In this document: positions 1 through 29,686 of the stretch, piece by piece
Layout of the letters: each line of letters opens with the position of its first letter
Numbering within the stretch: the stretch's first letter is position 1
Assembly (NCBI RefSeq): GCF_001194135.2
Contig: NC_069008.1
Span: forward strand, 11,970,930 to 12,006,411
Origin: Octopus bimaculoides
Lineage: Eukaryota
Reading direction: 5' to 3'
DNA: 35,482 nucleotides
Made by a program: the position numbers and the translations under genes
Notes under the pieces: generated by a model
Databases searched by the model: none
Told to the model about the DNA's origin: nothing
Seen by the model: the letters and a program-made list of their open reading frames with translations, nothing else

Positions 1-412
1 GTCAAACATTGGCGTCGATGTAATCAACTTATCCCTTTCCCCCAAATTGCTGTCCTTGTGACAAAATTTGAAACGGTTATTATTATTAAAGACTGTAAGA
101 TGGCGAGCTGGCAGAAATGCTTAGCGGTATTTCGTCCATTTTTATGTTCTGAGTTCAAATTCCGCCGAGTCAACTTTGCATTTTATTCTTTCGAGGTTGA
201 TAAATTAAGTACCAGTGAAACAGTGAGGGCAATGAAATCGACTAGTCCCCTCTCCCAAAATTTCAGGTCTTGTGCCTTTAGTAGAAGGGATTATTATTAT
301 TATTATTATTATTAATGGCAGTAAGATGGCGAAATCTTAAAACATCAGCAGTATTTCGCTTGTGTTTACATTCTGAGTTCAAATTCTGCCGAGGTTGACT
401 TTGCCTTTCATC
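1..412 (+). mobile_element. Three partial tRNA-derived SINE copies in tandem
   Basis: A-box-like TGGCGAGCTGGCAGAA at 101-116, B-box GAGTTCAAATTC at 151-162 and 375-386, (TAT)n tail at 290-313. The same sequence recurs at ~12690 and ~26460. Confidence 0.8.
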
Positions 413-429
413 TTCGCAACCATGTGCAA

Positions 430-1345
430 CATCAGTATCGTTGAACAAGTGGCAACATCAGCCGATAAAATAATGGAAGTATCTACTCCTTCCATTACCA
501 TAGCAGCCATAGCATTCCAGTTCCAGAGTTTTCGACGAGTCACAGAAAATCAATTGAAGACCTGGTAGCAACCTCCGTTTCAAAAGGAATACAGTCCCAC
601 GTGCAAGACACCGATCCTGCTCTAGATCTCTATCCAGACATCAGTACATTGGTAACCAGGGATCCGTATGTTGGTACCATACCAATTTCGGCGCCAAAGC
701 AAGGAAATGCACACCACTTTGCTCATATAGTGCCCAGGGAAACGCCCGAACGGAGCAGTAAGCACTGCTACTGCTTCTAGTGTCATCTCCACCAAGTCAT
801 GCAATTTTTATTAAAGTCGAAATTTCCCAGAAGAGCTTCCTGGTTGACTCAGGAGCCGTCTGTAGTATTTGGTCAACTAAATATACACAAAGAAAACCTT
901 TTCCTTCAGCCGCTACCTTGCAAGCGGTCAACCATTCACCTATCACCACATGTGGCGAAATTCTTCTCACCTTAAATATACGACTCAGACGATGCTTCCA
1001 GTGGATTTTTCTAGTCCCCGATCTGCAGTATCCAATCCTTGAGGCAGATTTCCTCTTCCATTTTTCCTTGCTAGTCGATCTGAAGAACAGGCAACTGATT
1101 GACAGTAAGACGCAGCCCAGTGTGTGTGGCACTGACTGTTTTGTTTCCACAGTCGGATTTGTTTTCTTTGTCGCCACTGCTTCCAACAAATACCACACAT
1201 TGTTGCAACCGTTCCCGGAGTTTACAAAACCCATGTCCCATAGAAAGGATAATTCGCACCCTGTAGAACACCACATTTCGAGCATGGGTCCTCCTGTCTT
1301 TTCTCGCTTGAGACATTTGTCAACAGAGAAACTTAAGGCTGCAAG
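430..1345 (+). mobile_element. Degenerate Ty3/Gypsy LTR retrotransposon fragment (gag C-terminus, aspartic protease, start of RT)
   Basis: Gag-terminal motif CWYHTNFGAKARKCTPLC (~670-725), protease FLVDSGAVCSI in ORF 780-1379, then HPVEHHISSMGPPVFSR typical of the pre-RT region. It is frameshifted and truncated by a SINE piece at ~1345. Confidence 0.85.
737..743 (+). other. Candidate -1 ribosomal frameshift heptamer (G GGA AAC) at the Gypsy gag/pol junction
   Basis: XXXYYYZ heptamer in gag frame (QGN) a few codons before the gag stop. Confidence 0.55.
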
Positions 1346-1623
1346 CTCGTTAATTTCACAAGCAGGCTGTTCTGGTTAACAGTGTCCACCATTATTCGAA
1401 AAATTAACTTCGTCAATCATTTTATATATATACATGTGTGTGTTGCACTCTGTCGGTTACAACAACGAGGGTTCCAGTAACAGCCTGCTCGTGAAATTAA
1501 TGTGCTTATGGCCTTAAGTTTCTCTGTTGACAAACGGGTGAGAAAAGGCAGGAGGGCCCGTGGTCGAAATGTGGTGTTCTACAGGGTGCAAATTATCCTT
1601 CCATAGGACATGGGTTTCGTTAA
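1222..1623. repeat. Imperfect inverted repeat of a Gypsy-SINE chimeric segment (arms 1222-1375 and 1474-1623)
   Basis: The reverse complement of 1474-1623 aligns to 1222-1375, including CACCCTGTAGAACACCACATTTCGA and TTTGTCAACAGAGAAACTTAAGGC. Confidence 0.9.
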
Positions 1624-2927: not shown

Positions 2928-3639
2928 ATGGCCACAGTCAAATAACTGAAACATTAAAAGAAAAACCCCAAAATCCTTTAAGTCTGAGATTTTTCAGATT
3001 TTTAAAAAATGTTTCAAAGAATACGTCATTTGTTTCATCTCATTATTTCAAATTAACTTTGCACACACAGACATACACACACCAATCTGCATGTGTGAAT
3101 TAAGCAGTCTCATACTTTGGCTGTGCACTTGTGCAAAGTTTTGTTTAAATTTTAAAATTTCAAGTTTAAAAATAAATCTGAATAGGTCAGTTTCAAATCA
3201 TTGAAAAGCAAAATGTGAATCGAATAGTAGTCATTTCCTTTGATTTCTAGATTGGAGCAAATAGGAAATAACACTGACCAAAGACAAAGAAATAAAATAC
3301 AATTTTGTCACATCGATAGAAAATAGGGATATTGATACCTTTTATCTTTTACTGCTTCAGTCATTGTACTGTGGCCATGCTGGTGCACTGCTTTGAAGAT
3401 TTTAATTTTAAAAAAATTGACCGCAATAATTTTTTTAAATCTGGTTCTTTTATTGGCTTCTCTTTGCCAAATTGCTATCTATCTGTCTGTCTGTCAGGGA
3501 CATTTTTCAATCCCTTTCTAACAAATGCACCAGCTATGCAGTGGCACTGAACCTAAAACCACATACTTGGGAAGCTAATTTCTTATCACACAGCCATATC
3601 TACACCTATGGTTTTAAAAATCTAATCAATGCTTTCATT

Positions 3640-3660
3640 TTATTATAAATTTCATTTCAG
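3640..3660 (+). promoter_or_regulatory. Candidate splice acceptor upstream of the long ORF
   Basis: T-rich tract ending TTTCATTTCAG at 3660. Confidence 0.45.
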
Positions 3661-3872
3661 TTCTGGTGTGAAATTGGTAAATTGAGAAGTAGACAAATTT
3701 CTCTCCAAAGGAAAGCTGAGACATAAAAGACATTAATCTAAATCTCACAGAACTCTTGGATTTAATGGTTTTGTAGCAGCCACCAATAAACACATGCACA
3801 AACACTTGCAAGCACACACACATACATGTGTAAGTATATATAAAGAAGAGTTAATACATCAAAGTTGAGAAA

Positions 3873-6800
3873 ATGTTGAAGATTGAAGAAAACCTAATTC
3901 TGGCTATTGATATACCTGCCAAATCAAATAATGATTTACTATCTGGTGATAAAAATTATAAGGAAGGGTCAATTATTGCCAAAGCATATAATGAAAGGAG
4001 CAAGAAGAAAACTGAAGAACGGGAAATACAGCAAATTTTTCACATAATCACATGTGGTAAAATAATGATAAAAGGCAACCACATCCAAATGTTTTTGGAC
4101 CTTGTAAATGAGAAGTCTAATGACATAGAACTTATGGGATTAGACAAACATCAGTTTTTAAGAAATGTCAGGCGTGAAATGAAAATCTTTCGGAAATATA
4201 CTAAACAAAACAATGATATGATTCTGCAAAATCTTCCTTGGTTTTGTGAACGACTGTTTGACATTTACGCTAACAGTAATCCCTACAAGAATAAGGCCAT
4301 TACATTACCAAAGCCATTCACAAAATTTCATTCTCCTTCTTCTTCTGAAGTTGTGCCAAGGAAATTAGAGTTTGAGGAATCTGGTGAAGATACCCCAAAT
4401 ATAATATCAAATATTGTCACAATCTATCATGGAATAGTAACCTACTCACCATATTTGATGACCTTACGTTGTAACACAACTGATGGTAGAAGTAATACAG
4501 TCCACTGTCCTTCACCTATCACAGACATTACAAGAATTGGTAAAGAAACTGTTCTGGTCACATTGCCATTTAGGCAAAAACTACTCATTATTAACCCCTC
4601 AAGTTGTGAAATGAAATCTCTGGATTATGGTTTCTACAAGATTTCTTATTTGAATCATTGTAAATTTGTGGGGCTGGAACTGTTTAGCAAGACAATCTAT
4701 CTTGTGGACTGGGCCAATGATACAGTGGAAAAAATAACTGCCCTCGAAGAGCAGCCTACAGATATCATAGTAGGACCTCAGCATCACCTCTTATTAGCAT
4801 TTGCTAATATAAATAAAGTTATCTGCTGCAGTCTTGGTGGCAGGCAGTTATTTCAGGTATACACACAGTCAACAGTTATTCCAACTAGTATCTCAGCTTA
4901 TCGCAATTATTTTTATGTCCTTCAAGGAAACGTCATTTACAGGATTTCATCTAAGGGTGGAGTGTCACAGAGAAAAATTGCGATAAAAGCTCAATATATT
5001 TGTTGTGGCACAAATTCTATTTTCCTGCTTGATTACTTAGGCATTGCATATACTTTTAAGACAAATGATAATTTTTGGCCAAGTATGACTTATCGTCAAC
5101 AAGCTCATACACCAACTGTGAAAAACCAAATTCATATTGATGATCCCTGTGAGATTCAAAATATTCTGCCTATGCCAGCCTCTTCTATATTACTTCTATA
5201 TAGGAGTCAAGAAGTCAAATTATTTAGTGATAATGGGCAAGTCATTCACAGAAGTACATTAACGTCTAAGTGCCAACCTACTGCCATCTGTCGAACTGAC
5301 TCAAACAGATTTCTTGTCCTTTATCAAGAAGATAGAAAACTTCAGTATATTGCATGCCCTGAACTAACTGAAGGTCACTTTATAGACATCGATGCTGATT
5401 ACATTCAAATATGTCATATGGTATCAAATAAGTACTTAGCTCTGACCACTGGTGGAAACGAAGTAGAGGCACATATCCTATTGATTACAGAGAACAAAAT
5501 TGACATTGTTGACAAAATTTCACTTAAGCATGAAGATGTCATCATTGCAGCAACTCCAATTAATTTTGTAGTAGCAGACATGAGAGAAAATGCACTGGTG
5601 TTTTATTCAAGCTCTGGTGAAGAGCTTTTTGTGAAACAGCTTGATTTTTACTCTAACCCTCATCATATCTACACTGACAAATTATACTTCTACGTTGTCT
5701 TCAGGAGAGAGTCTGTGATAGTATGTTACAATATAATTGGAGAAAGTAAATGGCAATTGAAACTGCCTTCAACTCCTTACTTTCACATTGATGTTTTCCA
5801 AGGAACTGTATATGTAGTGGATGTTATGCACAGTAGAATTCTTCTTTATAAATACTATGACTGGTCCAGTTGTTGTATACAGTTCAAAAATCCTTACATC
5901 AAAAATCTAGATATACGACTCAAAGAAAATAAGAATAACAAAATACTCATTGCCAAAATGTGCTGGCTTCCAAGTGGGCAGTTTGTGTTGTCCAACTTTA
6001 ATAATGATCGCTTGTTATATGTTTCTAAGGAGGGAGACATTATGTCCACATTATCTCTGCCATCTTTAGCTACAGATATATGCCGATGGGATTGTAATCA
6101 AATAGGTGTCACATTACCTCTAGAGAAACAACTATGGGTTATTGGCAATGTATCAAAAAGAGTTAGAACTCTATCATTAAGCCACCCTTATATATGGGTG
6201 CGTAAGCTCGGTGAAGGTCATACTGCTTGTGTTTGTGACAAACCTTCTCGTTTAGACATTGTATCGATTCAAAACCACAACCAAGGTGAAATAATTTCTA
6301 CAATCAATATACCTTTTGTAAAGTCATTAGTGATAGAAAACGAAACACAAAATGTGTTGGTTGTTACTAAAAAAAAGATATTTCTCTACAAACCTATTAC
6401 TAGGAGGAGGAGGAGGAGTAGTAGTAGTAGTAGCAGCAGCAGTAGTGGTAGTAGTAGTAGTAGTAGTAGTAAATTGGTCCCCACTCTTTTACTGCCTCAT
6501 ATCAGACCTCCACCCAGTCTCTATGGTGGATATATTGATAACATTTTTGTTTATCTGATAGACAACAGCAGTATGTTTGCTATAAATGACTATAACCTGG
6601 TAGTGAGCGATCACATTACAAATAATCAACTTAACATGCACATCGACCTGGTAGATGTATTTTCCAGAAACATCTGTGTCAGTGAAATGTTGTCCTCTAC
6701 ATTGCATCTGGAGGACCATACAGTTTCTGATAAAGCTCGACATATTTTAATCCCTCGATCTGTTGGAGAAAATGAATATATGGACATTACTGGTTTTTCA

Positions 6801-9011
6801 GTTATTACTGAAAACAACCTGATTATACTCTATGATAATGCAAATAGGAACATTAAGATATTAACATTTGATGGTCAACTTCTTGACTCTATAAAATTAA
6901 ATATTTTCCCGACATATATGTGTTGCTGGCAGTCAAACACACTGGTTATTACAACTGGTGATAAATACCAACTGTTAACATTAAAAGTGGAATTTCCATT
7001 GTCTCTGGTAACTTACCAGACAGAAAATGAATATTATTGTATTGCTTCTTTGTCTGACAATCTACTTGTATGTTATGGTTATACAGATGGAGAGAAATAT
7101 TTGCTTATTATTAAGATTGATGAAATACAGTCAACTGTGTGTGAAAGGAATAAAATAGTAACAGGCATTACTCAAATATTAAGGAAAAGTTATAACAATG
7201 GGATGTGTGGTATTGCAGTTACTGCTGAGGACGTCATCATACTCATCAGTGATGATTATATCATTTTCTTTAAGCGAAATGGTGAACTTTTACGTATGGT
7301 ACAACATCACATATATGTCAAGGAAAACTATATGACAATTGATGATGCTTTTTTGTACATTTATGGATGTTGGGATAAAGAAAATGACTTTCAACGTAGT
7401 CGCATTATGTGTTTGTTGCAGACTGGTAAATACAAGAGAATATTTTTAAATAAAAGACATTACAAACATGGAATAAATTTCTCCAGTATAAACTGCAATG
7501 GCCCAAGGTTTGTCGGAAACACTGAGAACCGTTTGTATGTTGAAGGTTTATTTGAATTTAATCGAGAAAGATTCTCCATTTGTAAGTTGCTAACAGACCT
7601 ATATCCTGTTGAAGTAAAAGATCTTGATATCTCTTTTGATGGACAGATAGTTGTATGTGAAAAAGCCAATACTGGCAATCTTAAAATATTTCAGTGTAAT
7701 GGGGAGCTGGTATATTACAGAGATATTGGAACTTTAGTTGGTGGTGTGTGTTATACAGAAGAAAGAGATATAATGGTCACAGTCCCTTACAGAAAAGAAA
7801 TATTTCAACTGAAGCAACAAGATTTGGCAAACTATAAAGTCTGGCAAAGTGAAATACCTTATGGAATAATATGCAGAAAAGCAGAAAACACCTACTGGTG
7901 TGTACATATTAACTTGACTGAATATTATACCATAGAGATTGATGGTGACAAATTGAACATTCTGGAATGCCTGTCATTAAAGCTTGACTCTGGTCTTCAT
8001 TTCCCTCCCGTTACACCTTATATGAACAATGAAATATTCAGTAATGAATTAATTAATACATTGAAACATAGCAAAGGAGATGGGAGGGAAAAATCATGTA
8101 AAATAATTGATAAAGGTAGATTAAAAGTGAGATGTGGTAATTACATTGCAGAGACTACGTTAGGAAGCAATGAAATATTAGTGAAGAGAATGCCACATAG
8201 AACAGCAATGTTTCCTCTTTCCACTCCTACAGGTATTGAACTAGATTATTATCATTACAATTATCAGTGCATCAAATTAATTATGCTACATGACAATGTT
8301 GCTGTTATTATACAAAACCCTACTCTCATTGTAACCAATACAACAGGTGACATACTTCATCATACTGTAATAGATAAAAAAGCTCAGGATATATGTCGGT
8401 GGACAGATGACTGTTTCATAGTCCTCTTACAAGAAGATAAACAACTGATGTTCTTCAAAAGAGATCTCTCCCATTTAAAAACCATCAACATTACAAAAGG
8501 TTATGAAATGATTTGTAAAAAGAATGACAATCAACTTGTGTGTGGTGGTTATACTTTAGATAAACGCTCTGGCTGGAAATTCTACTATGTCGATGTAGTT
8601 AACATCCTTGATGAAACATGTGAATACAGTCATGAAGTATGGTCTGGGGGAACTGAATTAAAGAAAATTTGTGTAACATCAAGTGAAGATATTGTTATTG
8701 TGCAGAAACCCAAATGGAGTTATGTTGTTGCATGTTGGTACAGAGAAGGTTTGGTTTGGAGTTTAGAAATAAATTTGAATATTCATGATGAGAGAATTCA
8801 TCTATCAGCACATGGTGAATATATATATATAACAGATTTGTCTAACAATATACACCAAATAGCTAGAGATGGTGAACAACAGTTATTCCTCAGCAGTGAT
8901 GATAGTGAACTCCACACAGTTCTTGGTATTGATATTTCGGCTGATTTTTTCATGATTTTTGGACCTGTTTCAGGACTTCACTCTTATTGTTTCTTACATT
9001 ATGAAAGATAA
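3873..9011 (+). CDS. 1712-aa single-exon protein with ~6 tandem NHL/TRIM-like beta-propeller units and an unrecognised N-terminal domain
   Basis: Uninterrupted 5139-nt ORF with an in-frame TAA at 3852-3854 upstream of the ATG. Recurrent blade motifs ITDITRI, PTAICRT, ATDICRW, PTYMCCW, VGGVCYT and AQDICRW occur at ~4520, 5280, 6070, 6910, 7740 and 8385. Beta-strand-like hydrophobic alternation. No RING/B-box, signal peptide or TM segment is evident by eye. Confidence 0.85.
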   Translation: MLKIEENLILAIDIPAKSNNDLLSGDKNYKEGSIIAKAYNERSKKKTEEREIQQIFHIITCGKIMIKGNHIQMFLDLVNEKSNDIELMGLDKHQFLRNVRREMKIFRKYTKQNNDMILQNLPWFCERLFDIYANSNPYKNKAITLPKPFTKFHSPSSSEVVPRKLEFEESGEDTPNIISNIVTIYHGIVTYSPYLMTLRCNTTDGRSNTVHCPSPITDITRIGKETVLVTLPFRQKLLIINPSSCEMKSLDYGFYKISYLNHCKFVGLELFSKTIYLVDWANDTVEKITALEEQPTDIIVGPQHHLLLAFANINKVICCSLGGRQLFQVYTQSTVIPTSISAYRNYFYVLQGNVIYRISSKGGVSQRKIAIKAQYICCGTNSIFLLDYLGIAYTFKTNDNFWPSMTYRQQAHTPTVKNQIHIDDPCEIQNILPMPASSILLLYRSQEVKLFSDNGQVIHRSTLTSKCQPTAICRTDSNRFLVLYQEDRKLQYIACPELTEGHFIDIDADYIQICHMVSNKYLALTTGGNEVEAHILLITENKIDIVDKISLKHEDVIIAATPINFVVADMRENALVFYSSSGEELFVKQLDFYSNPHHIYTDKLYFYVVFRRESVIVCYNIIGESKWQLKLPSTPYFHIDVFQGTVYVVDVMHSRILLYKYYDWSSCCIQFKNPYIKNLDIRLKENKNNKILIAKMCWLPSGQFVLSNFNNDRLLYVSKEGDIMSTLSLPSLATDICRWDCNQIGVTLPLEKQLWVIGNVSKRVRTLSLSHPYIWVRKLGEGHTACVCDKPSRLDIVSIQNHNQGEIISTINIPFVKSLVIENETQNVLVVTKKKIFLYKPITRRRRRSSSSSSSSSSGSSSSSSSKLVPTLLLPHIRPPPSLYGGYIDNIFVYLIDNSSMFAINDYNLVVSDHITNNQLNMHIDLVDVFSRNICVSEMLSSTLHLEDHTVSDKARHILIPRSVGENEYMDITGFSVITENNLIILYDNANRNIKILTFDGQLLDSIKLNIFPTYMCCWQSNTLVITTGDKYQLLTLKVEFPLSLVTYQTENEYYCIASLSDNLLVCYGYTDGEKYLLIIKIDEIQSTVCERNKIVTGITQILRKSYNNGMCGIAVTAEDVIILISDDYIIFFKRNGELLRMVQHHIYVKENYMTIDDAFLYIYGCWDKENDFQRSRIMCLLQTGKYKRIFLNKRHYKHGINFSSINCNGPRFVGNTENRLYVEGLFEFNRERFSICKLLTDLYPVEVKDLDISFDGQIVVCEKANTGNLKIFQCNGELVYYRDIGTLVGGVCYTEERDIMVTVPYRKEIFQLKQQDLANYKVWQSEIPYGIICRKAENTYWCVHINLTEYYTIEIDGDKLNILECLSLKLDSGLHFPPVTPYMNNEIFSNELINTLKHSKGDGREKSCKIIDKGRLKVRCGNYIAETTLGSNEILVKRMPHRTAMFPLSTPTGIELDYYHYNYQCIKLIMLHDNVAVIIQNPTLIVTNTTGDILHHTVIDKKAQDICRWTDDCFIVLLQEDKQLMFFKRDLSHLKTINITKGYEMICKKNDNQLVCGGYTLDKRSGWKFYYVDVVNILDETCEYSHEVWSGGTELKKICVTSSEDIVIVQKPKWSYVVACWYREGLVWSLEINLNIHDERIHLSAHGEYIYITDLSNNIHQIARDGEQQLFLSSDDSELHTVLGIDISADFFMIFGPVSGLHSYCFLHYER
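6402..6470 (+). repeat. (AGG)5(AGT/AGC)n microsatellite in frame within the CDS (R5 S10 G S7)
   Basis: Directly visible trinucleotide run translating to RRRRRSSSSSSSSSSGSSSSSSS. Confidence 0.95.
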
Positions 9012-9112
9012 ACATTTTTATAACTACTCCATTTTGTTGTTGTTTTTGTTGGAAATCTCTGTTTGTGGTCAGAATTGGCTGGAAATTGAATCTACATCAC
9101 ATTATGTAGACC

Positions 9113-9118
9113 AATAAA
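9113..9118 (+). terminator. Candidate polyadenylation signal
   Basis: AATAAA ~100 nt after the stop of the long ORF. Confidence 0.4.
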
Positions 9119-9249
9119 TCTTTTTTCCTACATTCTTCACTTCTTATATATATGAATGTCGGTGTATAGTTGTGTGTGAATATATATATATATTGCATGA
9201 TAGACTGACTGACAAACTCAGCTGGAGACTTGCCTGTAGATTCAGTTGG

Positions 9250-10860
9250 GGGTTGTGCGATAGGTAGAAAGTAAATGATCCAGTTTAGTTTGGAAGTTTC
9301 CAGTACTTTGCTTTTTCAATCCATTCTTTTTTCGCACATTCTGCTAGGCCATTTGAAGACGGATGATATGGTGCAGTTCTTATGTGATGTACCCCATTCT
9401 CTCTCAAAAATGTTTGGAAAACTTCACTTGTGAAAGGAGTACCATTATCTGAACAAATTGTTTCTGGAATCCCAAATGTAGAAAATGATGAGCATAGTCG
9501 GGCTACTATAGATTCTGCTGTGGCATGTACGTCTATCCCTTTTGAATGTGCATCAATAAGCACACCATACCATTAAGAGAACCAAAATAATCAATGTGTA
9601 ACCTTTTCCACAATTTCTATGGCCACTTACAGGGATGAACAAGTCCTGGCGTGTTTTGTCGCTGATATTATTGACAAATGTCACATCTGCTCAATATCAG
9701 CATCCAGATTGGGCCACTAACAATAGCTTTGAGATAATGCCTTCATTCAATTTATGCCTAGATGAGCATCATGCAACTCATTAAGCAATTGTTGTCTTAA
9801 TTTAAAGGGTACAATTATACGAGGACCCCAAAATATGCAAACTCAGTTCATCTTTATGCTGTAAAAACGGTTTTAATTCTTAACTTGTTCTGGGCATCCA
9901 CCCTCTTAAATGATGTTTGACACTGGACAGTATTTGATCTTTGTTTGTTTGTTGAAGTATATGGATAGGTGTGCCACTAAAATGTTGCACCATGTGTACC
10001 GGTTCCACTGATTGTTCAATTTTGTGTAATGAAGAAGTCAAGGGAAAACGACTCAATACGTCAGCAGTAACATTATAGGTCCAGGAATGCAATGCATACT
10101 ATAACTATAATCACTTAACATCAAAGCCCATTTCTGCATTCCAGGTGAACACATTTGCTGAATACCCAACTCTTCTCCAAGTAGTGCAATCAAGGGTTTA
10201 TGATCAGCATCAATTTCAAAATGACAGCCCCAAACATATTGATGGAATCGCTTGACACCAAATAAAACTGCAAGTTCTTTGTCCAACTGAGAATAGTTCT
10301 TTTTAGCTGGTAACAGAGTACGTGAGGCAAAAGCTACAAGACGAAAAGTACTGTCATTCATTTGATGACAAAGGGCTGCACCTAGCCCTGATGGAGATGC
10401 ATCACATTGTAACATAAAACGTTTATGTGGGTTATAAGGCACAAGTACAGACGAACCAGTAAGTAACTTCTTAGCTGTAGCAAATGCTTTCTGATGTTTA
10501 ACATTCCACTCCCAACGGAAATATTTATGCAATAGGGAATATAAGAGTGTCAGCACTGTTGAAATACTTGGTAAAAAGCGATAATGCGATAACATTCCTA
10601 CAAATGATCTTAACATACTATTGTTTTTAGGTTCTGGTGCACTTAAAATAGGCTGCACTTTATCACTCCTAATTTGCAAACCATCTTTGAGTTGGTAACC
10701 AAGGTAACAAACAGAATCACAAAAAAACTCAGTTTTAATCTGCTTTTGTGAAGACGATCAAGTATGATAGATAATGTATGAAGATGTTCATAATCAGAAC
10801 GCCCTGTGATTAGTAAATTGTAGCAGAGCTACATATTACCTAGCAATATTAGTTGACCTG
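9250..10860 (-). mobile_element. Degenerate Ty3/Gypsy pol fragment (RT C-terminus, RNase H, integrase)
   Basis: Minus-strand LITGRSDYEHL, SVCYLGY..DGLQIRSDKVQPILSAPEPKN, LQCDASPSGLGAAL, NYSQLDKELAVLFGVKRFHQY, TADVLSRFP, PETICSDNGTPFTS, HIRTAPYHPSSNGLAE. Several frameshifts and stops. Confidence 0.9.
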
Positions 10861-11199: not shown

Positions 11200-12670
11200 G
11201 TGAACACAGAATATATTTAGGGATCTAGTCAAGGACTTAGAAGAGGCACTAAGGCTGGGCTCCGCATCCCAAGTTTTGACAGCGAGATCAACCTTGGACC
11301 AACACCTCAAAGCCATACATGAGGACTATAGAGTTCGGGCTAAAGTACGTGCATTAGGTCACAATGGAATTAACGTTGTCGGGTGGGCCTGCACAGTAGA
11401 GACCCTGCATGGCTATTATGTCACAATTGGGTTTTTGGTCGATGAACAGGAGTGTTTGATCGAAGGACAAGATGAGATGTATGAGGTCTTTTACAAGCGC
11501 TTTGCCGAGTTATTCTGGAGGAGTGAGGCGCTGGACCATGGTGAGCTTCTTCAGAACTTTCTGGTTGGTGGCCCATGTCTCTCGCAAGAGGATGAGTGCT
11601 GTGAAGGACCAGTCATGGCTAAGGAAGTCGGAAAAGTCGCCAAGGATTGATGGCCTGCCCTATGAGTTTTTCAAAAGTATGCCAGACTTGTTCGGGCACC
11701 TACTGGCCAGCGTCCATGCCAACTGGCAGCAAAATGGGAGAATTCCCAAGGCTGCAAGCCAGGGAAGTAGGGTGGCGCTGATCAGAAAGGACCCGAACGA
11801 GAAAATTATTAGTTACTTTAAGCCCATAACCCTGTTAAACACAGAGTTAAAGATTTTAGCCAAGGTGCTAGCAAAGAGGTTGGTGCAGATCGTGGGTAGC
11901 CTTGTTGGGGAGGCACAAATATGCACCATTCCTGGCAGGACGATGCACAACAATCTCCATTTCATATGCTACACCTTAGAGCGGGTGGGTAAAATTTCTG
12001 GCAAAGGTGGGGCACTGGTACATTTCGACCAGTCTAAAGCATTCAATACGGTTGACCATCGGTACCTGGCAGCGGTTCTCAGGGCAGCCGGGCTGGGCCT
12101 GACTTTCCTTGGCTGGATTGCTGCTCTGTATAGCAACATCGAGTCTATCGTCCAGGTGAACGGTTTCTTTTCAAAACCGTTTGACATTAAGCACTCTGTT
12201 CACCAGAGATGTCCCCTGTCTCTGCTTTTGTATGTGTCGGTTCTTGAGCCATTACTGCATAGGTTGGAGGCTTTAGGGGGCATTTCACGTGATCTAAGCT
12301 GCAGAAGAACTGTGACCATGTACGCAGATGACACCACCATCATCGTGTCAGATGAAGGGCAGCTACCTTGTGTAGAAAACTCCATGAGAAGATACGAAAC
12401 GGTGGCAGGAGCAAAAATTAATCAGGATAAATCAGTCAGCTTGCAACTCAGCACCTGGGGGGGGGGCAAGTCAATGCCGTCCAATAACGTCATGGGACAT
12501 TTGACGGAAGGTCCAGTTAAGATGCTAGGGATCTGGTTTTGTCCGGATCTCTAAGTAGAGAAGAACTGGAGTGAGGTCATAAGCAAGGTAACTGTCCTAA
12601 CCCAGATTTGGTCTGGAAGGACGTTATCGCTGCTAGGGAGGGCAGAGGTGGTGCAGATGTACATAGCATC
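11200..12670 (+). mobile_element. Degenerate non-LTR retrotransposon ORF2 fragment, Tx1/L1-like
   Basis: RT motifs SPRIDGLPYEFFK, KPITLLNTELKILAKVLA, DQSKAFNTVDHRYL, QRCPLS and YADD in ORF 11472-12554. Frameshift near 11635 relative to ORF 11276-11650. It continues past the stop as EKNWSEVISKV...LSLLGRAEVV. Confidence 0.85.
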
Positions 12671-12689
12671 TGTTATATATTATTATTAG

Positions 12690-12915
12690 AGTGACGAGCT
12701 GGTAGAATCGTTAGTGTGCTAGATGGAAAGTGGTATTTCACCTCTTGCTATATTCTGAGTTCAAATTCTGCCAAGGTCGACTTTACCTTTCGTCTTTTTG
12801 GGGTTGATCAAATAAGAACCAGTCGATCACTGGGGTCGATGTAATCAATTCATCCCCCTCCTCCCCAAAACTGTGGTCCTTTTGGCAAAATTTGAAACCA
12901 TTATTATCGTTATTG
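12690..12915 (+). mobile_element. tRNA-derived SINE (same family as 95-313)
   Basis: GACGAGCTGGTAGAATCGTTAG, GAGTTCAAATTC, GGGGTCGATGTAATC, AAAATTTGAAACCATTATTAT. Confidence 0.8.
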
Positions 12916-13736: not shown

Positions 13737-14043
13737 TCAGGTGAAGGTGATCATGAGCTGAATACTCTAAACACTAAGTCATGAGTTCAATTCTCAGCAA
13801 TGTATTGTGTCCCTGAGAAAGACACTATTTTACATTGCTCCAGTCCACTCAGCTGGCAAAAATGAATAGTACTTGTATTGCAAAGGAACTAGCCTGGTCA
13901 CACTATCATGCTGAATCTCCCTGAGATTAAGGGTACACGTGTCTGTGGAGTGCTCAGCCACATGCACATTAATTTCACTAGCAGGCTGTTCCACTAATTG
14001 GATCAACTGGAATCCTTATCATTGTAACTGATGGAGTGCCAGT
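13737..14043 (+). mobile_element. tRNA-derived SINE with conserved central box
   Basis: GAGTTCAATTC B-box and GTGTCCCTGAGAAAGACACT core. The 3' part matches the reverse of 33020-33150. Confidence 0.75.
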
Positions 14044-16171: not shown

Positions 16172-17191
16172 TTATGATTGTGTTGGTATATGTTTGTGAG
16201 AGATTAAGGTACTTAAATGAGAGAATGATTTACCACAGACATCACAGAGATAAGGTTTTTCTCCTGTATGAATACGTTTATGTCTAGTTAAGTGGTGATG
16301 AAGAGAGAATGATTTATTGCAGATATCACAATGATATGGTTTCTCTCCTGTATGAACACGTTTGTGTATAGTTAATTGACTAAACTGAGAGAATGTTTTA
16401 CCACAAATATCACAGAGATATAATTTATCTCCTGTATGAACACGCTTGTGATTAGCTAATTCACTATTCTGAATGAATGATTTACCACAGATATCACAGT
16501 AGTATAGCCTCTCCCCTGTATGAATGCGTTTGTGCCTATGTAAGCTACGATTTTGAAAGAATGATCTGCCACAGATATCACAATGATATGTTTTTTCTCC
16601 AGTATGAACATCTTTGTGTTCAGTTAAATGATGCCTTTGAGAGAATGATTTATCACAGATAATACAGTGAAATGGTTTCTCTCTTGTATGAATGCGTTTG
16701 TGTACTTTTAAATCACTACTCTGAGAGAATGATTTATCACAGACATCACACTGATATGGTTTCTCTCCAGTGTGAATACGTTTATGTTCAGCTAAGTGAC
16801 TACTTCTAGAGAATGATTTACCACAGATATAACAGCAGTATGGTTTTTCACCAGTATGAATGCGTATATGAGCAGTTAAGTCACTTCTTCCAGAGAATGT
16901 TTTGCCACAAATATCACACTGATATGGCTTCTCTCCTGTATGAATGCGCCTGTGTTTAGTTAAGGTACTGCCTACAGAGAATGATTTACCACAGATATCA
17001 CAAATATATGGTTTCTCTCCCGTATGAATATGCTTGTGTGTAGTGAGGTAATGCTTTTGAGAGAATATCTTTCCACAGAACTCACAGTCATATGATGTTT
17101 CTCCTTTATCTTTGTTTATAACATTAAGAGAACCCAAACTCTTAAACTGAGTGTTAGATATACACTTATTGTCACAAAATTCAGTTCCCAT
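16172..17191 (-). CDS. C2H2 zinc-finger protein, 339 aa, 11 tandem fingers (last lacks the canonical second His)
   Basis: Repeated CxxCGKSFS...HxRxH-TGEKPY. About 30-aa N-terminus with no KRAB/SCAN/BTB evident. Confidence 0.95.
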
Positions 17192-17384: not shown

Positions 17385-17402
17385 CTGAAATATTTCACTA
17401 TA
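17385..17402 (-). promoter_or_regulatory. Candidate splice acceptor for the ZNF coding exon
   Basis: Minus strand ATAGTGAAATATTTCAG, ~190 nt upstream of the ATG. Confidence 0.45.
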
Positions 17403-18210
17403 ATTCGGTATCTTGTCTTATAACTTACAAAATTGTGATGGTACTGTGGGCTATTTTTGGATAAAATGAGAAAGGTGCAAGAATGTGAGGGAAATGAGGT
17501 AGCACAGGGAGAATGACTGATATCAGAGAGAGAGAACAGAAGTGTGTAAGCAATAAATATGGAGTAGCAGTAGGATGATAATGTTAATACAGCTGTCATT
17601 CTACCATACACACGCATGTGCTTTCAGTCAGTCTACAAAGCCAAGTTGTAGCAGACAGACAATAACTAATGAAAACAGTGTTTGTGTGTATCTATGTATG
17701 CATGTATGTATGTCACACGCTGTTACCTTTAAGAAAAGGAATGATTTACATCAAAGTTTTACTCTGTTAACATGTATATACATACGTTTAAGACATTAGA
17801 TATACGAATAGAAATAACTTAATTCTACAACTATATTTGTGATTAAACCAAACTCATTCTTTTTTTCTCATCCCTCTCTTTCTGCACACACAAACGTCTT
17901 TCATATCATGCTCTTTCTTGCTCTACTGAGGGACAGCATTTAATGCTAGGGTTTCGTGTAAGCACTTAGGATTACAATTTTGAGTAAGGGTAAGGATTAT
18001 GTTTAAGCAGAAACTAAAAAGGGATTCAAAGGATTTGAATTTGTGTACAAATTTTTACAGAATTGATCTTGCATATGTCTGGAATTTGGATATGAAAAAT
18101 ATATTCATAAAAGAAGAAAAATAAAAAGGTCTACAAAGTGTTCTTAGTTGAAAATTTTGCTGAGTGTTTTTTCAAAAATATTTACTACTGTTAATTCTCT
18201 GAGTAATTAA

Positions 18211-18239
18211 CTCAGGCAATGCTGGGTATTTCAGCTAGT
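18211..18239 (+). mobile_element. Helitron-type 3' terminus (hairpin plus CTAG|T) of a non-autonomous remnant
   Basis: CTCAG-GCAATG-CTGGG stem-loop followed by TATTTCAG CTAG T, similar to the terminus at 27111-27137. Confidence 0.55.
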
Positions 18240-18686
18240 TATTACATAAACAAGGTTATATTGGAGGAATAATGATGATGCCGGTAATGCCAATGTCGTA
18301 TGATGATCTGAAATAATAGAGAAACAACAGAGTAAGGTACAAAAGATATTTTTAAAAAATAAAGATACAATAGAAATTTTATTATATTTCTATAGAGTTA
18401 AGCTGTAGAAAGAAACATGAGCCTTGACAACAGAACAATAATGATAATGATATAACTGTTTCTCATCAATTGTATTATAATAGTATAGATGAATCAATCT
18501 ATCATAGTATACCTGAATGAATATATATCTATATATATATATATATATACAATATATATATATATATATATATATATANNNNNNNNNNNNNNNNNNNNNN
18601 NNNNNGTGCTAGAAAAACCTGCCCCCCTACAATAAATATTGTGAAGCACATTAGAATATGATGTGTGTAATGAGGGTCAGAGTGTA

Positions 18687-19712
18687 CGAGGTGATATCAA
18701 AAGGTTCCCAGACTAGTTATGTTTAATAAAAAATAACTTATTTACTCTTTTACTTGTTTCAGTTATTTGACTGCGGCCATGCTGGAGCACCGCCTTTTTG
18801 AGCAAATCGACCCCGGGACTTCTTCTTTGTAAGCCTAGTACTTATTCTATCGGTCTCTTTTGCCGAACCGCTAAGTGACGGGGACATTAAACACACCAGC
18901 ATTGGTTGCCAAGCAAATGCTAAGGCGACAAACACACACACACAAACATACACACACATATATATATATATACATACATATATACGACAGGCTTCTTTCA
19001 GTTTCCGTCTACCAAATCCACTCACAAGGCTTTGGTTGGCCCGAGAGTATAGTAGAAGACACTTGCCCGAGATGCCACGCAGTGGGACTGAACCTGGAAC
19101 CATGTGCTTGGTAAGCAAGCTACTTACCACACAGCCACTCCTGCACCTAACATCATCTCCTTTGAAATAGTCACTTTACATAGCAATACACATATCTAGT
19201 TGCTCTCCTTCAAATGATTAAAAAGGTCATGGTAGAACTCTTGATTGACAGTCTAGCTTTGGGAGACAAATTCTCAATGCACACTACTGTGGATGTTAAA
19301 AAAAAAAAATAATAATANNNNNNNNNNAAAAAAAAAAAAAATAATAATAATAATGAGCATGCTTTTGATTAAGCTGTCATGCCTTTGAAAAGCCTGTGCT
19401 ACTCAAAACATTGCAAATGACCCATTGCCTCATTACCATTAGCTTGCCAAAGCATGCTCAACGTCTCTGTAGCAGATTTCCCAAATTTAATGCAAAATTT
19501 CATGTTGACTCATTGTTCCAACTTCCTGTCCACGATAAAATTGCAGACAACAGCATACACAAATTTCACAACTTGTGAAGTAAACACAGCAATGTCACTT
19601 GGTCACATTACTTCACGAAGGTCATCGCTAGCTCTCACTGTGCATGCAACTGTGTGCCGCCACCTGTTGGTGTGCTACAAAACTACTCCAGGAACTTTTT
19701 GATGCCACCTTA
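18687..19712 (-). mobile_element. Internally deleted Mariner (Tc1/mariner) element with a nested SINE
   Basis: TA|CGAGGTGATATCAAAAGGTTCC versus GGAACTTTTTGATGCCACCTTA imperfect TIRs. Minus-strand LEQ*VNMKFCIKFGKSATETLSML...QCFE*H (19380-19533, transposase N-terminal HTH) and DMCIAM*SDYFKGD (~19160-19200, C-terminus). Confidence 0.8.
18745..19148 (-). mobile_element. Full-length tRNA-derived SINE with internal (TA)/(TG) microsatellite
   Basis: Head GGAGTGGCTGTGTGGTAAG...GGTTCAGTCCC, core GGCAAGTGTCTTCTACTATA. Other copies or pieces are at 2928, 3350, 23808, 33975 and 35200. Confidence 0.85.
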
Positions 19713-20454
19713 CATAATAAGTCTACATATGGATCTCCCATTTGTTATATTTCTGTTCAATCTCCAACAGCTGCCCTACATTGCACTACCTTCTCATCTA
19801 TTACTTACCCTTTCTCTTAACAAAGGGGACTACATCAGATCTGGTAGTATTAGATACATGCTATCTTCACTCCTCATCTCCCAAGTCACTGCCTCTCTCA
19901 CTTTCTCTCTCTCAATACCCCTCAGATTCATTACTGTCCATTACTACCTAACAGCTCATGGAAGACATTGCGAAAACATAGATATAAAGTAAATATATTT
20001 TCAGTAAACTGCCTAGAAATCAAGAGGTAAAATTTTGACACAGCTATTTTACACATATCGAAACATCGCCCTCCAGCCTTTTTGTTTTTTTCAAGTGTTT
20101 TAGAATTTCCCATATGAAATGCCGCAAAAAATAAACAAAAACAAAAAACAAACAATTCAATTTCATTCGTGAGTTATTCCGAATGTCCGCCAAAATGAGC
20201 ATTATAGCTTACTTGCAATGATATATAAAACCGTGTTCGGTGTGAAATATCGTTGTTTACATCATCTGTCTTTCCAATATCTCAAATGCCAATTTATTTT
20301 CTTGTGTGAATCAACAGGCACTAAAAATATGACAACAGAAATTTTAAAAAATAGACTTGAAACGTAAACGACGAAATGCATTTACGTAGTGTTTATATAC
20401 CGACAGAAGAATAAATATGCATGATTTCTAAAACAAATTTCGCTTAAAATATAG

Positions 20455-24759: not shown

Positions 24760-25788
24760 ATGTTGGAAGAAATAAGGAAGTCATCATTCCACTGTGATGT
24801 CTGTAAAATGTCATTCTCTCTAGAATCAAACCTCATTAAGCACAAACGTATTCGTACAGAAAGGAAACCACATCATTGTGATATCTGTGGTAAATCATTC
24901 TCTCAAAAAAGTAAACTAGCTACTCACAAACGTATTCATACAGGTGAGAAACCATATCACTGTGATATCTGTGGTAAGTCATTCTCTCAGAATGGATACT
25001 TAGCTACACATAAGCTTGTGCACACAGGAGAAAAACTATATCATTGTGATGTCTGTGGTAAATCTTTTTCTCATGGAAGTAACTTAACTAATCACAAACG
25101 TATCCACACAGGCGAGAAACCATATCATTGTGATTTATGTGGTAAATCATTTGCTGAAAATGGAACCTTAACTAGACACAAACGTATTCATACTGGAGAA
25201 AAGCCTTATCGTTGTGATATCTGTGGTAAATCATTCTCTCGTAAATGTGAAGTAAATATACACATACGCATTCATACAGGAGAAAAACCATATCGCTGTG
25301 ATATATGTGGTAAATCATTCTCTAAAAATGAAAATGTAACTATACATAAGCGTATTCATACAGGAGAGAAACCATATTGCTGTGATATCTGTGGTAAATC
25401 ATTCTCTCAAAAGGAAAACTTAACTACTCACAAGCGTGTTCATACAGGAGAGAAACCATATCAGTGTGATGTTTGTGGTAAATCATTCTCTGAAATTGGT
25501 CATGTCACAAGACACAAACGAATTCATACTGGAGAGAAGCCATTTCACTGTGATACCTGTGGTAAGTCATTCTCTGAAAATGGAGTTTTAACTAAACACA
25601 AACGTATTCATACTGGAGAGAAACCATTTCACTGTGATATCTGTGGTAAATCATTCTCTGAAGCTGGCTATGTAACAAGGCATAGACGTATTCATACAGG
25701 AGAGAAGCCATATCAGTGTGATATTTGTGGCAAATCATTCTCTCTAACTCATAACTTAGCTAAACACAAACATATTCACACAAGATAA
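24760..25788 (+). CDS. C2H2 zinc-finger protein, 342 aa, 12 tandem fingers (first lacks the second His)
   Basis: Repeated CDICGKSFS...[11 protein letters not shown] with no effector domain evident. Confidence 0.93.
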
Positions 25789-26459: not shown

Positions 26460-26680
26460 ATACAACAAGCTGACAGAATCGTTAGCACACTGGGCAAAAT
26501 GCTTCGTGGCATTTCATCTGTCCTTACTTTCTAAGTTCAAATTTCACCCAGGTTCACCTTGCCTTTCATCCTTTTGGGGTCACTAAAATGAGTACCAGTC
26601 TAGTATTGGGGTCGATGTAATTGACTATCCTCATTCCCCAAATTTCAGGCCTTGTGCTTATAGTAGAAAGGATTATATGC
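26460..26680 (+). mobile_element. tRNA-derived SINE (same family as 95-313)
   Basis: AAGCTGACAGAATCGTTAGC, AAGTTCAAATTTC, GGGGTCGATGTAATTGACT, CAAATTTCAGGCCTTGTGC...TAGAAAGGATTAT. Confidence 0.8.
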
Positions 26681-26878: not shown

Positions 26879-29686
26879 CACTGTGCAACAAAAAAGATCT
26901 ATTGTCTGCTACTCAGACAAATGGTGCTGTACTAAACTAAATTGAGTATGCTGATTCCGAATCTGAACTCAGAATTGCTGTAGCATGTCAGGATTTTGAG
27001 TTATGCACCGAATTATATATCAATACTATATTTGAATCGGGAATAGTTTAGTTCAAGGTAGATAATTATTATTATAGTATATTAGTACTGTATATAGTAT
27101 TATAATATAACTAGCTGATGTACCTGGTAATTCCCAGAAAAGCAAGGTTTATCCTTTAGTTCCGTTCTCATAATTGTTTTGCCAATCCAATAACAACAAT
27201 ACAAAGTATGTAGCCCATGAAACAGTGTGCATTTACAGAGAATACCGAACTATCTTATATAGGACCTTGTTGTTAGGAAATCCGAATAAGTTATGAATCC
27301 CCAAATCATGAAGTCAGTTACATAATAACATGAAATTAGTGATCCGATAGTAAGAATTCAAATAAAGTACCCCTGAAAAGGGCTCTAATGCATTCCCATA
27401 GTATATAGAACTTAGGAAGAAATACCAATAAGGTATGTATACCAAAATTGTGAAGCATGTTACATAATAACAGGCTAATCAGATATGAGATAACAACAAT
27501 TCAAAGTAAATAACTTGTGTGTTCCCAGAGAATATATCCCTTAGGGGCGCTACTGTTGAAATACATTTACAATGAATACAGAAACAGACTGACTTTTGGT
27601 TTTACAGTAGACGTACAAATAAATTTGCATATAGATTTAAAAATAAAATCGCATGTAGATTATCAATACATTTACAACACTTACAAATATTGCAGTTAAA
27701 TAATAAATACCTGATGATTTGGTGAATCTTATTAAGTTTGCAGAGCTTCTTGATAAACAGTTTTGGTCGATTAGGATTGCCGACACATGAGCATCCCACA
27801 TAAAGTTGGCCATGGGAGAAAACTGGTTCCACAAGGTTCAAACCTACCACATCCAAGGACTGTCCCTGGGCCTTGTTAATGCTCATTGCAAGGTCATTTT
27901 CAACAGGAATTGCAGGCACTTGTACTGGAAAGCATATCCAAGGGAATAAATTGAATTCTAGGAATGAATACGGGCTCACCGCTTGCTTTACCAGTCAAAA
28001 TTATTGTCCCCAAGACTTAGCATCATCTTTCTTATAAGTCGTGTGCCATAACAAAGCTTCGGTGGATCAAGGTTTCGAAGCAGCATAACTGTTGCTCTAA
28101 TCTTGAGGTTCATGTTGTGAGGTGGGAGGCAGGGTATTGTTAGACTATTCAAAAATTCAACTGGATAATTCACAGCTTCATCAATGTCGAGTACAGTGTC
28201 AATAGAATTGTAGATGTGACACTCACCTGGCAACTGTTCCAGAAGTTTTATGTTCAAATCATCAGCTGTCACATTCTTTGGAACTAAAATGGCATGGGCT
28301 TTCAGCCAGTTGTGGTTTGTATACTGATTCCTTAAGTTAGGAAACACCTTATTCATTAGTTCCTTTAAATCAGATACCATGTGTCCAAAAGGCAAGCTTA
28401 CCCGGCCATCCTTCTTGCCAACCAAAGTGCCATTACCGATGTCCAACAGTTGCTTTGAAAAGGTTCTGTCAGCATCATCACCACTGAGCTGCAGTTTCAT
28501 GTTGGTTGTGAATCTCTGCTTTTGCACATTGCTCCATAGGTAGGATGACTTTATGCTGACGTTTACCTCATCAGCTCTTGTCCTCTTTGGAACCACAGGA
28601 AGGATTTGTCTAAAGTCTCCTGCAAGCAAGACTTGGATGTTAAAGGAAAATATATTGGTTATATATGTGGACCCCTTGTAGGGGCCCTAGCTATCCAATT
28701 ATAGATTTTTATTAAACTTCAATGAGCCTAGTAACAAACTGGATGTTACTTGAACATTTTTGCAAAGTTTCATGAAAATTTGTTAATGGGTGTAGACGGC
28801 AACTTGACATAAACAGACAACTTGTGTTTATAAATGTATGTAGATGGTACACAGTATATTTATGTTAAGGGAATACTCACCTTATTTTTGATTTGCTCAG
28901 CTCAGAAATGTTTGAGACACTTGCTCTTGCACTTATGCGTCATGCTGGTCTCCTGTTGTAGGAACCAGCAGTAGTCACCCAACGTGTGGATTGAACCGGC
29001 TTTGATACCTTGTTTCCTTCTCAGATATGTCCTGGTGGAGCCTCTCACCATATTCATCACTAAGAGCACCAAGTTTCGTTGGAAAAAAAATTGAGATGAG
29101 AATGCAAGAAGTGCATTTTAAGGGACATCCATCATCCCACTCTTTCATATGCTGTTTATTAAATCAGCATAGTTTTCAACTTTATGATTTCCAAGAAAGT
29201 TCTGTACAACTAATACAAATGAATCCCATGCCGTCAGCTTAACTGGATTCAGTTTACCTCTGAATTTGCTATCAGGTATCAATTTTCTAATCTCGGGTCC
29301 AACGAAAATGCTTGCTTCAGTTTTGCGTCACTTTCCTCTGCACCAAATTTTATTTTTAAGTACTGGAAGTATAGTTATAATCTTGTGCATGCACACAACT
29401 CAAAATCCTGACGTACTAGAACAATTCTTTGATTTAGGCTAAAACATGCTTTTACAATAATAAGAGTAGAAATCAATATTATTAAATAATATCAATTTCA
29501 ACCAGTGGTCAGCATACGTAAAAAACGTCCAAGGACTGTGAATTATATTTAAATATAAACAAGAGAAGAGTCCACTAAGTGGATTCCTTGTTTGCTAAAA
29601 AGAGACGTCAAACCGTCCTACCATGAAATCTGTGTTCTCAAATTAGCATATGTTTACTCCAGTAGCAAAATCTTTGTTGACCAGTG
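26879..29686 (-). mobile_element. Internally deleted TIR DNA transposon, Chapaev-like (CMC), interrupted by a Helitron
   Basis: Termini CACTGTGCAACAAA (26879) and TTTGTTGACCAGTG (29686), flanks TAA/TAT, subterminal inverted pair 26963-27008/29385-29437. Minus-strand transposase C-terminus LTAWDSFVLVVQNFLGNHKVENY, MSLKMHFLHSHL, LGALSDEYGERLHQDI, GDYCWFL (~28904-29265). The family name is from recall of this motif set. Confidence 0.75.
27111..28844 (-). mobile_element. Internally deleted Helitron with PIF1-like helicase fragment and both canonical ends
   Basis: Minus strand A|TCTAC at 28845/28844, 3' hairpin CTGG-GAATTA-CCAG (27137-27124) then CTAG|T (27114-27110). Helicase motifs [34 protein letters not shown] and [10 protein letters not shown] in frameshifted ORFs 27988-28629 and 27602-27979. 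Confidence 0.92.

Follow-up and report, generated by a model that had tools for sequence, protein, structure and literature searches.

In TRIM E3 ligases, NHL propellers are known to occur singly, as the C-terminal recognition domain; those of Brat, LIN-41/TRIM71 and Mei-P26 bind RNA. Canonical propeller topology assigns the B-C and D-A loops to one face and the A-B and C-D loops to its opposite, and it is with the B-C/D-A or 'top' face that Brat, LIN-41 and further NHL/WD40 propellers bind RNA or protein. Tandem six-bladed propellers of the YWTD type are found in LRP5/LRP6 and LRP1/2, where they provide separate ligand-binding sites along one chain; these proteins are extracellular receptors, with the propellers spaced by epidermal growth factor (EGF) modules. 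We analyzed a 35,482-nucleotide stretch of the Octopus bimaculoides genome (contig NC_069008.1, positions 11,970,930 to 12,006,411; hereafter the window), in which an initial annotation, made from the sequence alone, had proposed that a 5.1-kb open reading frame (ORF) encodes a lineage-specific protein of about six tandem NHL/TRIM-like propellers. The domain is known but the architecture is new: six tandem NHL-like propellers, separated from the RING-B-box-coiled-coil (RBCC) part, follow a novel N-terminal module. No description of a chain of six NHL propellers detached from the ligase part was found in the searchable literature.

Gene and domain organization

The gene (window 3873..9011, + strand) consists of one ORF that starts with ATG and runs for 1712 codons without an internal stop, and its complete coding sequence specifies a protein of 1712 aa (197 kDa, isoelectric point [pI] 6.65). 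At the composition of the window (35% G+C; stop probability 0.070 per codon), the chance of 1712 stop-free codons is about 10^-54. A stop in the same frame is located 6 codons 5' of the ATG, and an AATAAA is present at 9113, 100 nt past the stop codon. The identical protein is encoded on chromosome CM046628.1 of O. bimaculoides assembly GCA_001194135.2, at approximately 11.97 Mb. In blastn, window 3569-9193 aligned with 9701-15340 of the orthologous O. sinensis locus (CM016888.1, L001) at 90% identity, the alignable O. sinensis DNA consisting of the ORF, about 300 bp upstream and about 180 bp downstream. The conserved upstream flank (3569..3872, +), presumably the 5' untranslated region (UTR) or promoter, contains TATATAAA about 35 nt 5' of the ATG, and the conserved 3' flank (9012..9193, +), which includes the AATAAA, is presumed to be the 3' UTR. 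The O. sinensis orthologue (LOC115226324, 1717 aa) is full-length, 85% identical and likewise uninterrupted, with all length differences in frame. That the coding sequence is uninterrupted, as annotated, was borne out here and in every full-length paralogue and orthologue examined, each of which is a single ORF, as was the description of an open frame amid broken transposon ORFs, since the transposon-derived ORFs nearby (RNase H, LINE and PIF1; see below) are all short fragments.

The protein comprises an N-terminal module of 160 aa (aa 1-160; 3873..4352, +), delimited by alignment, and six homologous units of 216-279 aa, designated U1 to U6, in keeping with the period of roughly 215-280 aa first noted. 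All are on the + strand. U1 (aa 161-414; 4353..5114) was placed by cross-unit hidden Markov model (HMM) matches, its full-length profile alignment with U2 and the unit alignment; U2 (aa 415-680; 5115..5912) by AlphaFold2 and Foldseek; U3 (aa 681-959; 5913..6749) by profile alignment with U6 and the unit alignment; U4 (aa 960-1235; 6750..7577) by a model of U4-U6, HMM matches and tblastn; and U5 (aa 1236-1451, 216 aa; 7578..8225) and U6 (aa 1452-1712; 8226..9008) by the U4-U6 model and by profile alignment of each with U4. The pI values of U1 to U6, a crude proxy for surface charge, are 8.6, 5.7, 9.2, 5.9, 6.1 and 5.3, respectively. U3 contains a disordered, Arg5- and Ser-rich low-complexity insert, RRRRRSSSSSSSSSSGSSSSSSSK (6402..6473, +), partly encoded by (AGT)18, which varies in length and composition among orthologues and paralogues (unit alignment columns 217-241).

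Global profile-profile alignment (hhalign) joined U4 with U6 (E = 4e-14), U3 with U6 (1.5e-10), U2 with U6 (1.8e-7), U2 with U4 (2e-6), U4 with U5 (3e-5) and U1 with U2 (5e-4, full length), these pairs together connecting all six units. HMMs built for each unit from its orthologues matched the other units in register, with scores of up to 31 bits, and an exhaustive HMMER search with a 27-sequence unit profile returned six matched stretches in the window protein and in its full-length relatives. As the units share only 13-19% identity in the unit alignment, profile methods were needed to detect the repetition; self-BLASTP of the protein gave only the identity match. At the DNA level the ORF has no repeats besides the in-frame (AGT)18 serine run (6417-6471), so the unit duplications are ancient.

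The initial annotation had reported a DICRW-like motif at about 4520, 5280, 6070, 6910, 7740 and 8385, and all six copies were recovered. The motif, 'x-D/G-I/V-C-x-W ... V-T-L-P-x-x-K-Q-L', begins at nt 4518, 5277, 6069, 6906, 7737 and 8382 (aa 216, 469, 733, 1012, 1289 and 1504) and covers strands A-B-C of blade 2. The best copy is ATDICRWDCNQIGVTLPLEKQLWV (6069..6140, +), and the others occupy 4518-4589, 5277-5348, 6906-6977, 7737-7808 and 8382-8453 (+). The literal string DICRW occurs only twice in the protein, at aa 735 and 1506.

The N-terminal module has a conserved core of approximately 'GLD..FL ... QNL.WF..RLFDIY..SNPY ... KFRPLS'. It gave no Pfam match and no PDB profile match, a search with the N-terminal alignment yielded no new relatives, and its hhalign comparisons with the coiled-coil regions of three TRIM relatives were insignificant. 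With just 2 Cys and 4 His in aa 1-160, it is neither a RING nor a B-box. No signal peptide or transmembrane segment was predicted in the 1712-aa protein, which by default is presumably soluble and intracellular.

The octopod gene family

The gene belongs to a family of at least 5 genes per genome, with further paralogues, 45-56% identical, in O. bimaculoides, O. sinensis and O. vulgaris that carry only the database names 'uncharacterized' or 'hypothetical'. The exhaustive search gave 19 named proteins at E < 1e-30, every one of them from an Octopus species or Argonauta hians; one further family member is 85% identical to an Octopus gene, and the multi-unit form was found in no squid, cuttlefish or other mollusc protein of that search. 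A second homologue search, with the unit alignment, added one fragment. The annotated lineage specificity is therefore upheld, the family being confined to Octopus species and Argonauta. No match to a well-characterized gene or transposon protein, which the initial annotation had named as an argument against it, was encountered, and no published description of the family or of its locus identifiers was found in the searchable literature.

The closest paralogue of the window gene is 56% identical to it; another lies 2.8 Mb away on the same O. bimaculoides chromosome. O. bimaculoides LOC106882419, LOC128250759 and LOC128251161 and A. hians Ahia01_000013500 share with the window protein the N-terminal module, the U1-U6 order, the short U5 and the single ORF, but are 28-56% identical to it, and in some there are additional low-complexity inserts. 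In the three Octopus species and Argonauta, every orthologue and paralogue model begins with the same non-RING module, and the order of the six units does not vary among the paralogues or in Argonauta. When the unit HMMs were matched to the Argonauta protein and to the Octopus paralogue that has diverged most, each scored best at its own position, the short U5 included, which indicates that the six-unit gene predates these splits. The family has two deep branches. The slow one (clade I) is represented by LOC106882419, for which O. vulgaris and O. bimaculoides are 94% identical; the other is a fast clade that has expanded and includes the window gene, with 83-89% identity between species and 45-67% between paralogues.

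In two paralogues (P0003 and P0004), acidic repeats of the ESEDQI(S/F) type take up about 150 aa within U6, and the Argonauta protein (P0015) has proline/glutamine/tyrosine-rich repeats before U6 and ADNTRMV repeats at its N-terminus. From these alignments, the propeller loops appear to tolerate large lineage-specific low-complexity insertions. Several family members, both full-length and fragmentary models, are apparently located on the same homologous small chromosome in each species (29.2 Mb in O. vulgaris, 15.1 Mb in O. sinensis and 18.6 Mb in O. bimaculoides), suggesting a loose gene cluster. Those models that are fragmentary (260-870 aa) may represent pseudogenes or annotation errors.

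Predicted fold of the units

The AlphaFold2 model of U2, computed from the unit alignment, had a mean predicted local distance difference test score (pLDDT) of 87.7 and a predicted template modelling score (pTM) of 0.85, and showed 24-25 strands arranged as six four-stranded blades. In a model of U4-U6 (pLDDT 71.5, pTM 0.45), U4 and U6 each formed six four-stranded blades, with block pLDDT of about 80 across most of U4 and about 85-93 in U6. U5, about 50 residues shorter, was modelled with three blades at good confidence, about 70 residues at low confidence (aa 1369-1437) and one more four-strand sheet, and is predicted to be a truncated or degenerate propeller. This short form is retained in all paralogues and in Argonauta. 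U5 may borrow strands from its neighbours or form an open propeller. Repeated propellers, the absence of which would have spoken against the initial annotation, were thus predicted; its count of about six stands for five full six-bladed propellers, three of them modelled (U2, U4 and U6), plus the truncated U5.

In a Foldseek comparison of U2 with the PDB, the top 10 matches were all NHL domains. Thin was the single best (E = 5e-10, probability 1.00), and the ten belonged to Thin, LIN-41/TRIM71 and TRIM3 (E = 5e-10 to 8e-9, template modelling score 0.64-0.69). TRIM2, with which the range extends to E = 1e-8, came close behind, as did Mei-P26 and Brat. Designed six-bladed 'Pizza' proteins and WD40 domains ranked below NHL. 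When the unit profile was searched against PDB sequences, it detected the NHL domains of TRIM2/TRIM3 (E about 1e-9), Brat (2e-7), Mei-P26 (3e-6), TRIM71 (4e-6) and Thin (8e-6). A Pfam scan of the whole protein and phmmer against the PDB gave nothing significant, the Pfam scan including a sub-threshold WD40_CFAP43 at E = 0.063. The Pfam NHL model scored on only 2 of the 27 units, both below threshold (best E 0.0024); U2 scored 14.2 bits, with the match falling on the blade-2 motif, and a paralogue (P0012) 18.5 bits. Because Pfam NHL stays sub-threshold, the assignment is made by transitive homology and fold and not by a curated model. Homology to bona fide NHL domains is upheld by both profile and fold, and the protein is a divergent member of the NHL propeller superfamily.

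Two other assignments were considered and rejected. A WD40 propeller does not fit, as the units have six blades and not the usual seven, there is no Pfam WD40 match and WD40 domains rank below NHL in Foldseek. Proteins of 1000-6000 aa matched by the unit profile in multiple stretches were not accepted as architectural relatives; they are metagenomic (ENA/JGI) repeat proteins that match blade by blade and, where named at all, are called YncE or WD40.

Relationship to TRIM-NHL proteins

The best matches outside the family in the exhaustive search consisted of one stretch covering a whole unit and located at the C-terminus of proteins of 550-730 aa. Pfam detected a RING and/or B-box in 6 of 10 such proteins and an above- or near-threshold NHL in 5 of the 10. 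The nearest relatives, at 100 bits to the unit profile, are RING-B-box-NHL proteins of cuttlefish (Sepia pharaonis) and abalone (Haliotis), which carry the blade-2 motif in the form 'P..GIC.W....VVTLP..KQ'. The protein of Sepia (Acanthosepion) pharaonis (CAE1315789.1, P0030) scored 61.8 bits to the U4 HMM, exceeding any unit-on-unit score, and tblastn of its propeller against the window hit 6801-7457, in U4 (E = 1.3e-8). By sequence, U4 is the unit closest to the single propeller of the cephalopod RING-B-box-NHL proteins. The initial annotation had derived the units from the TRIM NHL propeller, and this is in agreement with the finding that the closest structures are TRIM-NHL domains and the closest sequences RING-B-box-NHL proteins of molluscs. 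The homology searches argue strongly that the units descend from the NHL-type propeller at the C-terminus of mollusc TRIM (RING-B-box-coiled-coil-NHL) proteins.

The RING and B-box themselves are missing. Pfam detected neither in the whole protein or in aa 1-160, in a type of scan that is able to reveal B-boxes, since P0030, P0041, P0044 and P0052 all show them. When five RBCC N-termini were used in tblastn, nothing better than E = 5 was obtained in the window or in the 10 kb upstream, and the weak matches fall in zinc-finger genes. The annotated absence of both domains is therefore extended from the ORF to the window and the 10 kb upstream. It follows that there is no detectable E3 ligase or other catalytic domain, and that the protein, having neither RING nor B-box, is not a TRIM.

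Compared with the TRIM-NHL proteins (LIN-41/TRIM71, Brat, Mei-P26, TRIM2, TRIM3 and Thin/TRIM32), the octopus protein has the same six-bladed propeller with four strands per blade, but it lacks RING, B-box and filamin domains, has six propellers instead of one, and its units are only 9-15% identical to solved NHL domains. Sepia CAE1315789.1 and the Haliotis rubra 'TRIM2-like' protein (XP_046544206.1, P0044) are similar in propeller sequence and blade-2 motif; however, they have one C-terminal propeller after a full RING/B-box/coiled-coil part, whereas the octopus protein has six propellers after an unrelated N-terminal module. With the LRP YWTD propellers (compared from general knowledge) the protein shares the arrangement of several six-bladed propellers of the same type per chain, but it has no signal peptide or membrane anchor, and its propellers are abutting and NHL-like.

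Selection on the two propeller faces

Substitution rates were estimated by the Nei-Gojobori method against the syntenic O. sinensis orthologue. For the whole gene, dS (synonymous) was 0.177 and dN (non-synonymous) 0.071, giving a dN/dS of 0.40. The gene is thus under purifying selection overall, and a ratio near 1, named in the initial annotation as an argument against it, was not obtained. By unit, dN/dS was 0.26-0.33 in U1-U4, 0.78 in U5 and 0.76 in U6.

Loops were classed from the DSSP strand strings of U2, U4 and U6 together with the canonical propeller topology. Family conservation was 0.44 on the B-C/D-A face vs. 0.69 on the other face (Mann-Whitney p = 3e-17), and 26% vs. 7% of the amino acids differed between the orthologues. 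Between the window gene and its O. sinensis orthologue, dN/dS was 0.86 (bootstrap 0.49-1.68) in the B-C/D-A loops, 0.19 in the A-B/C-D loops and 0.31 in the strands. The paralogue LOC128250759 and its O. sinensis orthologue gave 1.17, 0.39 and 0.55, respectively, the top loops of U4 reaching 1.5 in this pair. The excess of non-synonymous change on the top face relative to the rest was significant in both pairs (Fisher p = 4e-4 for the window pair and 3.5e-3 for the LOC128250759 pair). On these estimates, divergence on one propeller face outpaces that of both the strands and the other face several-fold.

Proposed function and alternative explanations

The window contains an intact, selectively maintained, single-ORF nuclear gene of an octopod-only family. 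We propose that its product is a cytoplasmic multivalent recognition scaffold, a reading to which, judging from the sequence comparisons, we assign a probability of about 0.55. Each propeller would have its own independently evolving top-face binding site, and with six separate sites one chain could bind several ligands at once, or a repetitive ligand in many copies, at high avidity. The conserved N-terminal module and the bottom faces would serve in folding, inter-propeller packing or contact with a constant partner. As it carries no ligase part, the protein would be an adaptor, a sequestering factor or a sensor, and not an enzyme. The initial annotation had likewise put forward a multivalent binding scaffold, for RNA binding or pattern recognition, and a propeller face that evolves fast would be consistent with it.

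Several points weigh against this reading, some concerning the propellers and others their function. U1 and U3 were placed by profile alignment and length and not by a three-dimensional model, and packing between domains is unreliable at the pTM of 0.45 of the U4-U6 model. No unit reaches the 20-bit gathering score of the Pfam NHL model (PF01436), and in the unit-profile search of the PDB a Nostoc WD40-repeat protein (2ymu) scores above the NHL domains; its score is a sum of weak blade-level matches, as no single stretch passes alone. The collections searched yielded no contig of transcript origin for this gene. The label 'top' comes from canonical topology and DSSP strings and not from inspected coordinates, although the contrast between the two faces is independent of it. 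Whole-gene dN/dS values of 0.4-0.6 are high for a core cellular scaffold. Finally, the dN/dS of the variable face is statistically indistinguishable from 1, so that diversifying selection accounts for it no better than does relaxed constraint on long loops.

The nature of the ligands is the weakest step of the proposal. Top-face dN/dS values from near neutral to above 1, together with the division of the family into one slow gene and a fast clade that has expanded, speak for targets that change quickly, such as products of pathogens, viruses or transposons. Oysters have numerous TRIM2-, TRIM45- and TRIM71-like genes, which track immune phenotypes (PMC9892467), and we lean to changing targets because of such immune associations of mollusc TRIM genes, the fast face and the paralogue expansion. 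Carried further, the multivalent scaffold might be an octopod intracellular recognition or restriction factor, its six TRIM-derived propellers diversifying their top faces independently in the course of an arms race against parasites such as viruses or transposons; the factor would capture targets by avidity without a ligase, perhaps handing them to the TRIM/ubiquitin machinery via the N-terminal module and the bottom faces. This specific form is put forward tentatively and is, on present evidence, rather doubtful.

If the protein were instead a constant structural or cytoskeletal scaffold, acting as the Thin/TRIM32 NHL domain does on myofibril proteins or as EMLs do, the variable face would merely consist of unconstrained loops. 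In favour of this, the Thin NHL domain is the single best structural match, dN/dS on the variable face does not significantly exceed 1, conservation is strong in the architecture and on the bottom faces, and the clade I member evolves slowly (94% between species). However, an octopod-only range, several diverging paralogues and a dN/dS of 0.4-0.6 are atypical of core structural proteins, and the raised rate falls specifically on the canonical ligand-binding face and is repeated in an independent gene pair. We consider a constant scaffold unlikely.

A multi-site RNA-binding regulator, in which the propellers bind short RNA motifs on electropositive tops and read clustered motifs in mRNA or in viral or transposon RNA, appears still less probable. 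The best structural matches include LIN-41/TRIM71 (with the RNA complexes 8j72 and 6fq3), Mei-P26 and Brat, two units (U1 and U3) are basic, and the Arg5/Ser-rich insert of U3 weakly resembles SR-type splicing proteins (PF10500, E = 0.059). Yet the protein-binding NHL domains of Thin, TRIM2 and TRIM3 match equally well, four of the six units are acidic (pI 5.3-6.1), and the Arg/Ser insert is not kept among paralogues. Moreover, RNA-contact residues are untraceable at 9-15% identity, and a fast-evolving binding face is unusual for sequence-specific RNA readers.

It is very improbable that the ORF is the large last exon of a conventional TRIM gene with RING, B-box and coiled-coil exons upstream. 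Mollusc TRIM relatives do end in the same type of propeller, and a 552-aa O. sinensis gene model spans the locus on the same strand, making transcription through the region conceivable; but the tblastn searches with five RBCC N-termini, which gave no better than E = 5, the non-RING module that begins all models in three Octopus species and Argonauta, and the stop 6 codons upstream of the ATG all contradict it. A transposon- or virus-derived ORF, or a chance or decaying one without host function, is effectively refuted, although the surrounding DNA is transposon-rich and the alignment with O. sinensis stops about 300 bp before and 180 bp after the ORF. Pfam found no transposon or viral domain, paralogues at most 56% identical imply no recent copying, synteny extends to the downstream zinc-finger gene, a stop-free frame of this length would arise by chance with a probability of 10^-54, dN/dS is 0.26-0.33 in U1-U4 and the architecture is conserved to Argonauta. 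Chance ORF, pseudogene, transposon cargo and hidden TRIM exon were all rejected on this evidence.

Flanking DNA and neighbouring genes

The neighbourhood of the propeller gene is rich in zinc-finger genes and transposons. Pfam identified remnants of a long terminal repeat (LTR)-retrotransposon RNase H (10053-10679, -) and of a LINE-type reverse transcriptase (11472-12554, +), and a fragment of a PIF1-type (Helitron-like) helicase (27988-28629, -). A 199-aa ORF at 780-1379 (+) had no Pfam match. Two C2H2 zinc-finger ORFs are built of 84-bp tandem finger units. The first, of 339 aa (16172-17191, -), is syntenic with a 315-aa gene in O. sinensis, where this downstream zinc-finger gene is found in the same order. 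The second encodes 342 aa (24760-25788, +); its 84-bp array extends to 26168, beyond the stop at 25788, and this copy may therefore be broken or differently spliced.

In the O. sinensis annotation of CM016888.1, the 552-aa gene model covers the entire 25-kb locus on the same strand, so that the propeller gene there may sit inside an intron of another gene. No such spanning model was called at the O. bimaculoides locus. Short segments of the window (114-243, 12726-12855 and 26468-26626; 13869-14039; and 18953-19142) match tandem arrays at the O. sinensis locus L001, where arrays have periods of about 183 bp (7554-8417), 270 bp (19195-20104) and 185 bp (17387-18828). Judging from these matches, they appear to be satellite-like families common to O. 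bimaculoides and O. sinensis. Runs of N, representing assembly gaps, are present at 2544-2927, 18579-18605, 19318-19327 and 31686-32058, and account for the apparent multi-frame ORFs at 2438-2954 and 31438-32273. An Rfam scan of the window revealed no RNA family.

Implications for octopod biology

The octopod gene provides a clean natural example of a recognition domain that was freed from its effector and then multiplied, and its six paralogous propellers, all within the same chain, form a ready-made set in which to compare how binding specificity diverges. Should the protein prove to be a constant scaffold, it would still represent a new multi-propeller architecture, of modest general interest; if the recognition-array reading is true, the interest would be high. 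Cephalopod innate immunity and genome defence are poorly understood, and a lineage-restricted family with a fixed hexavalent architecture and one fast face makes a concrete candidate for testing in cephalopod defence.

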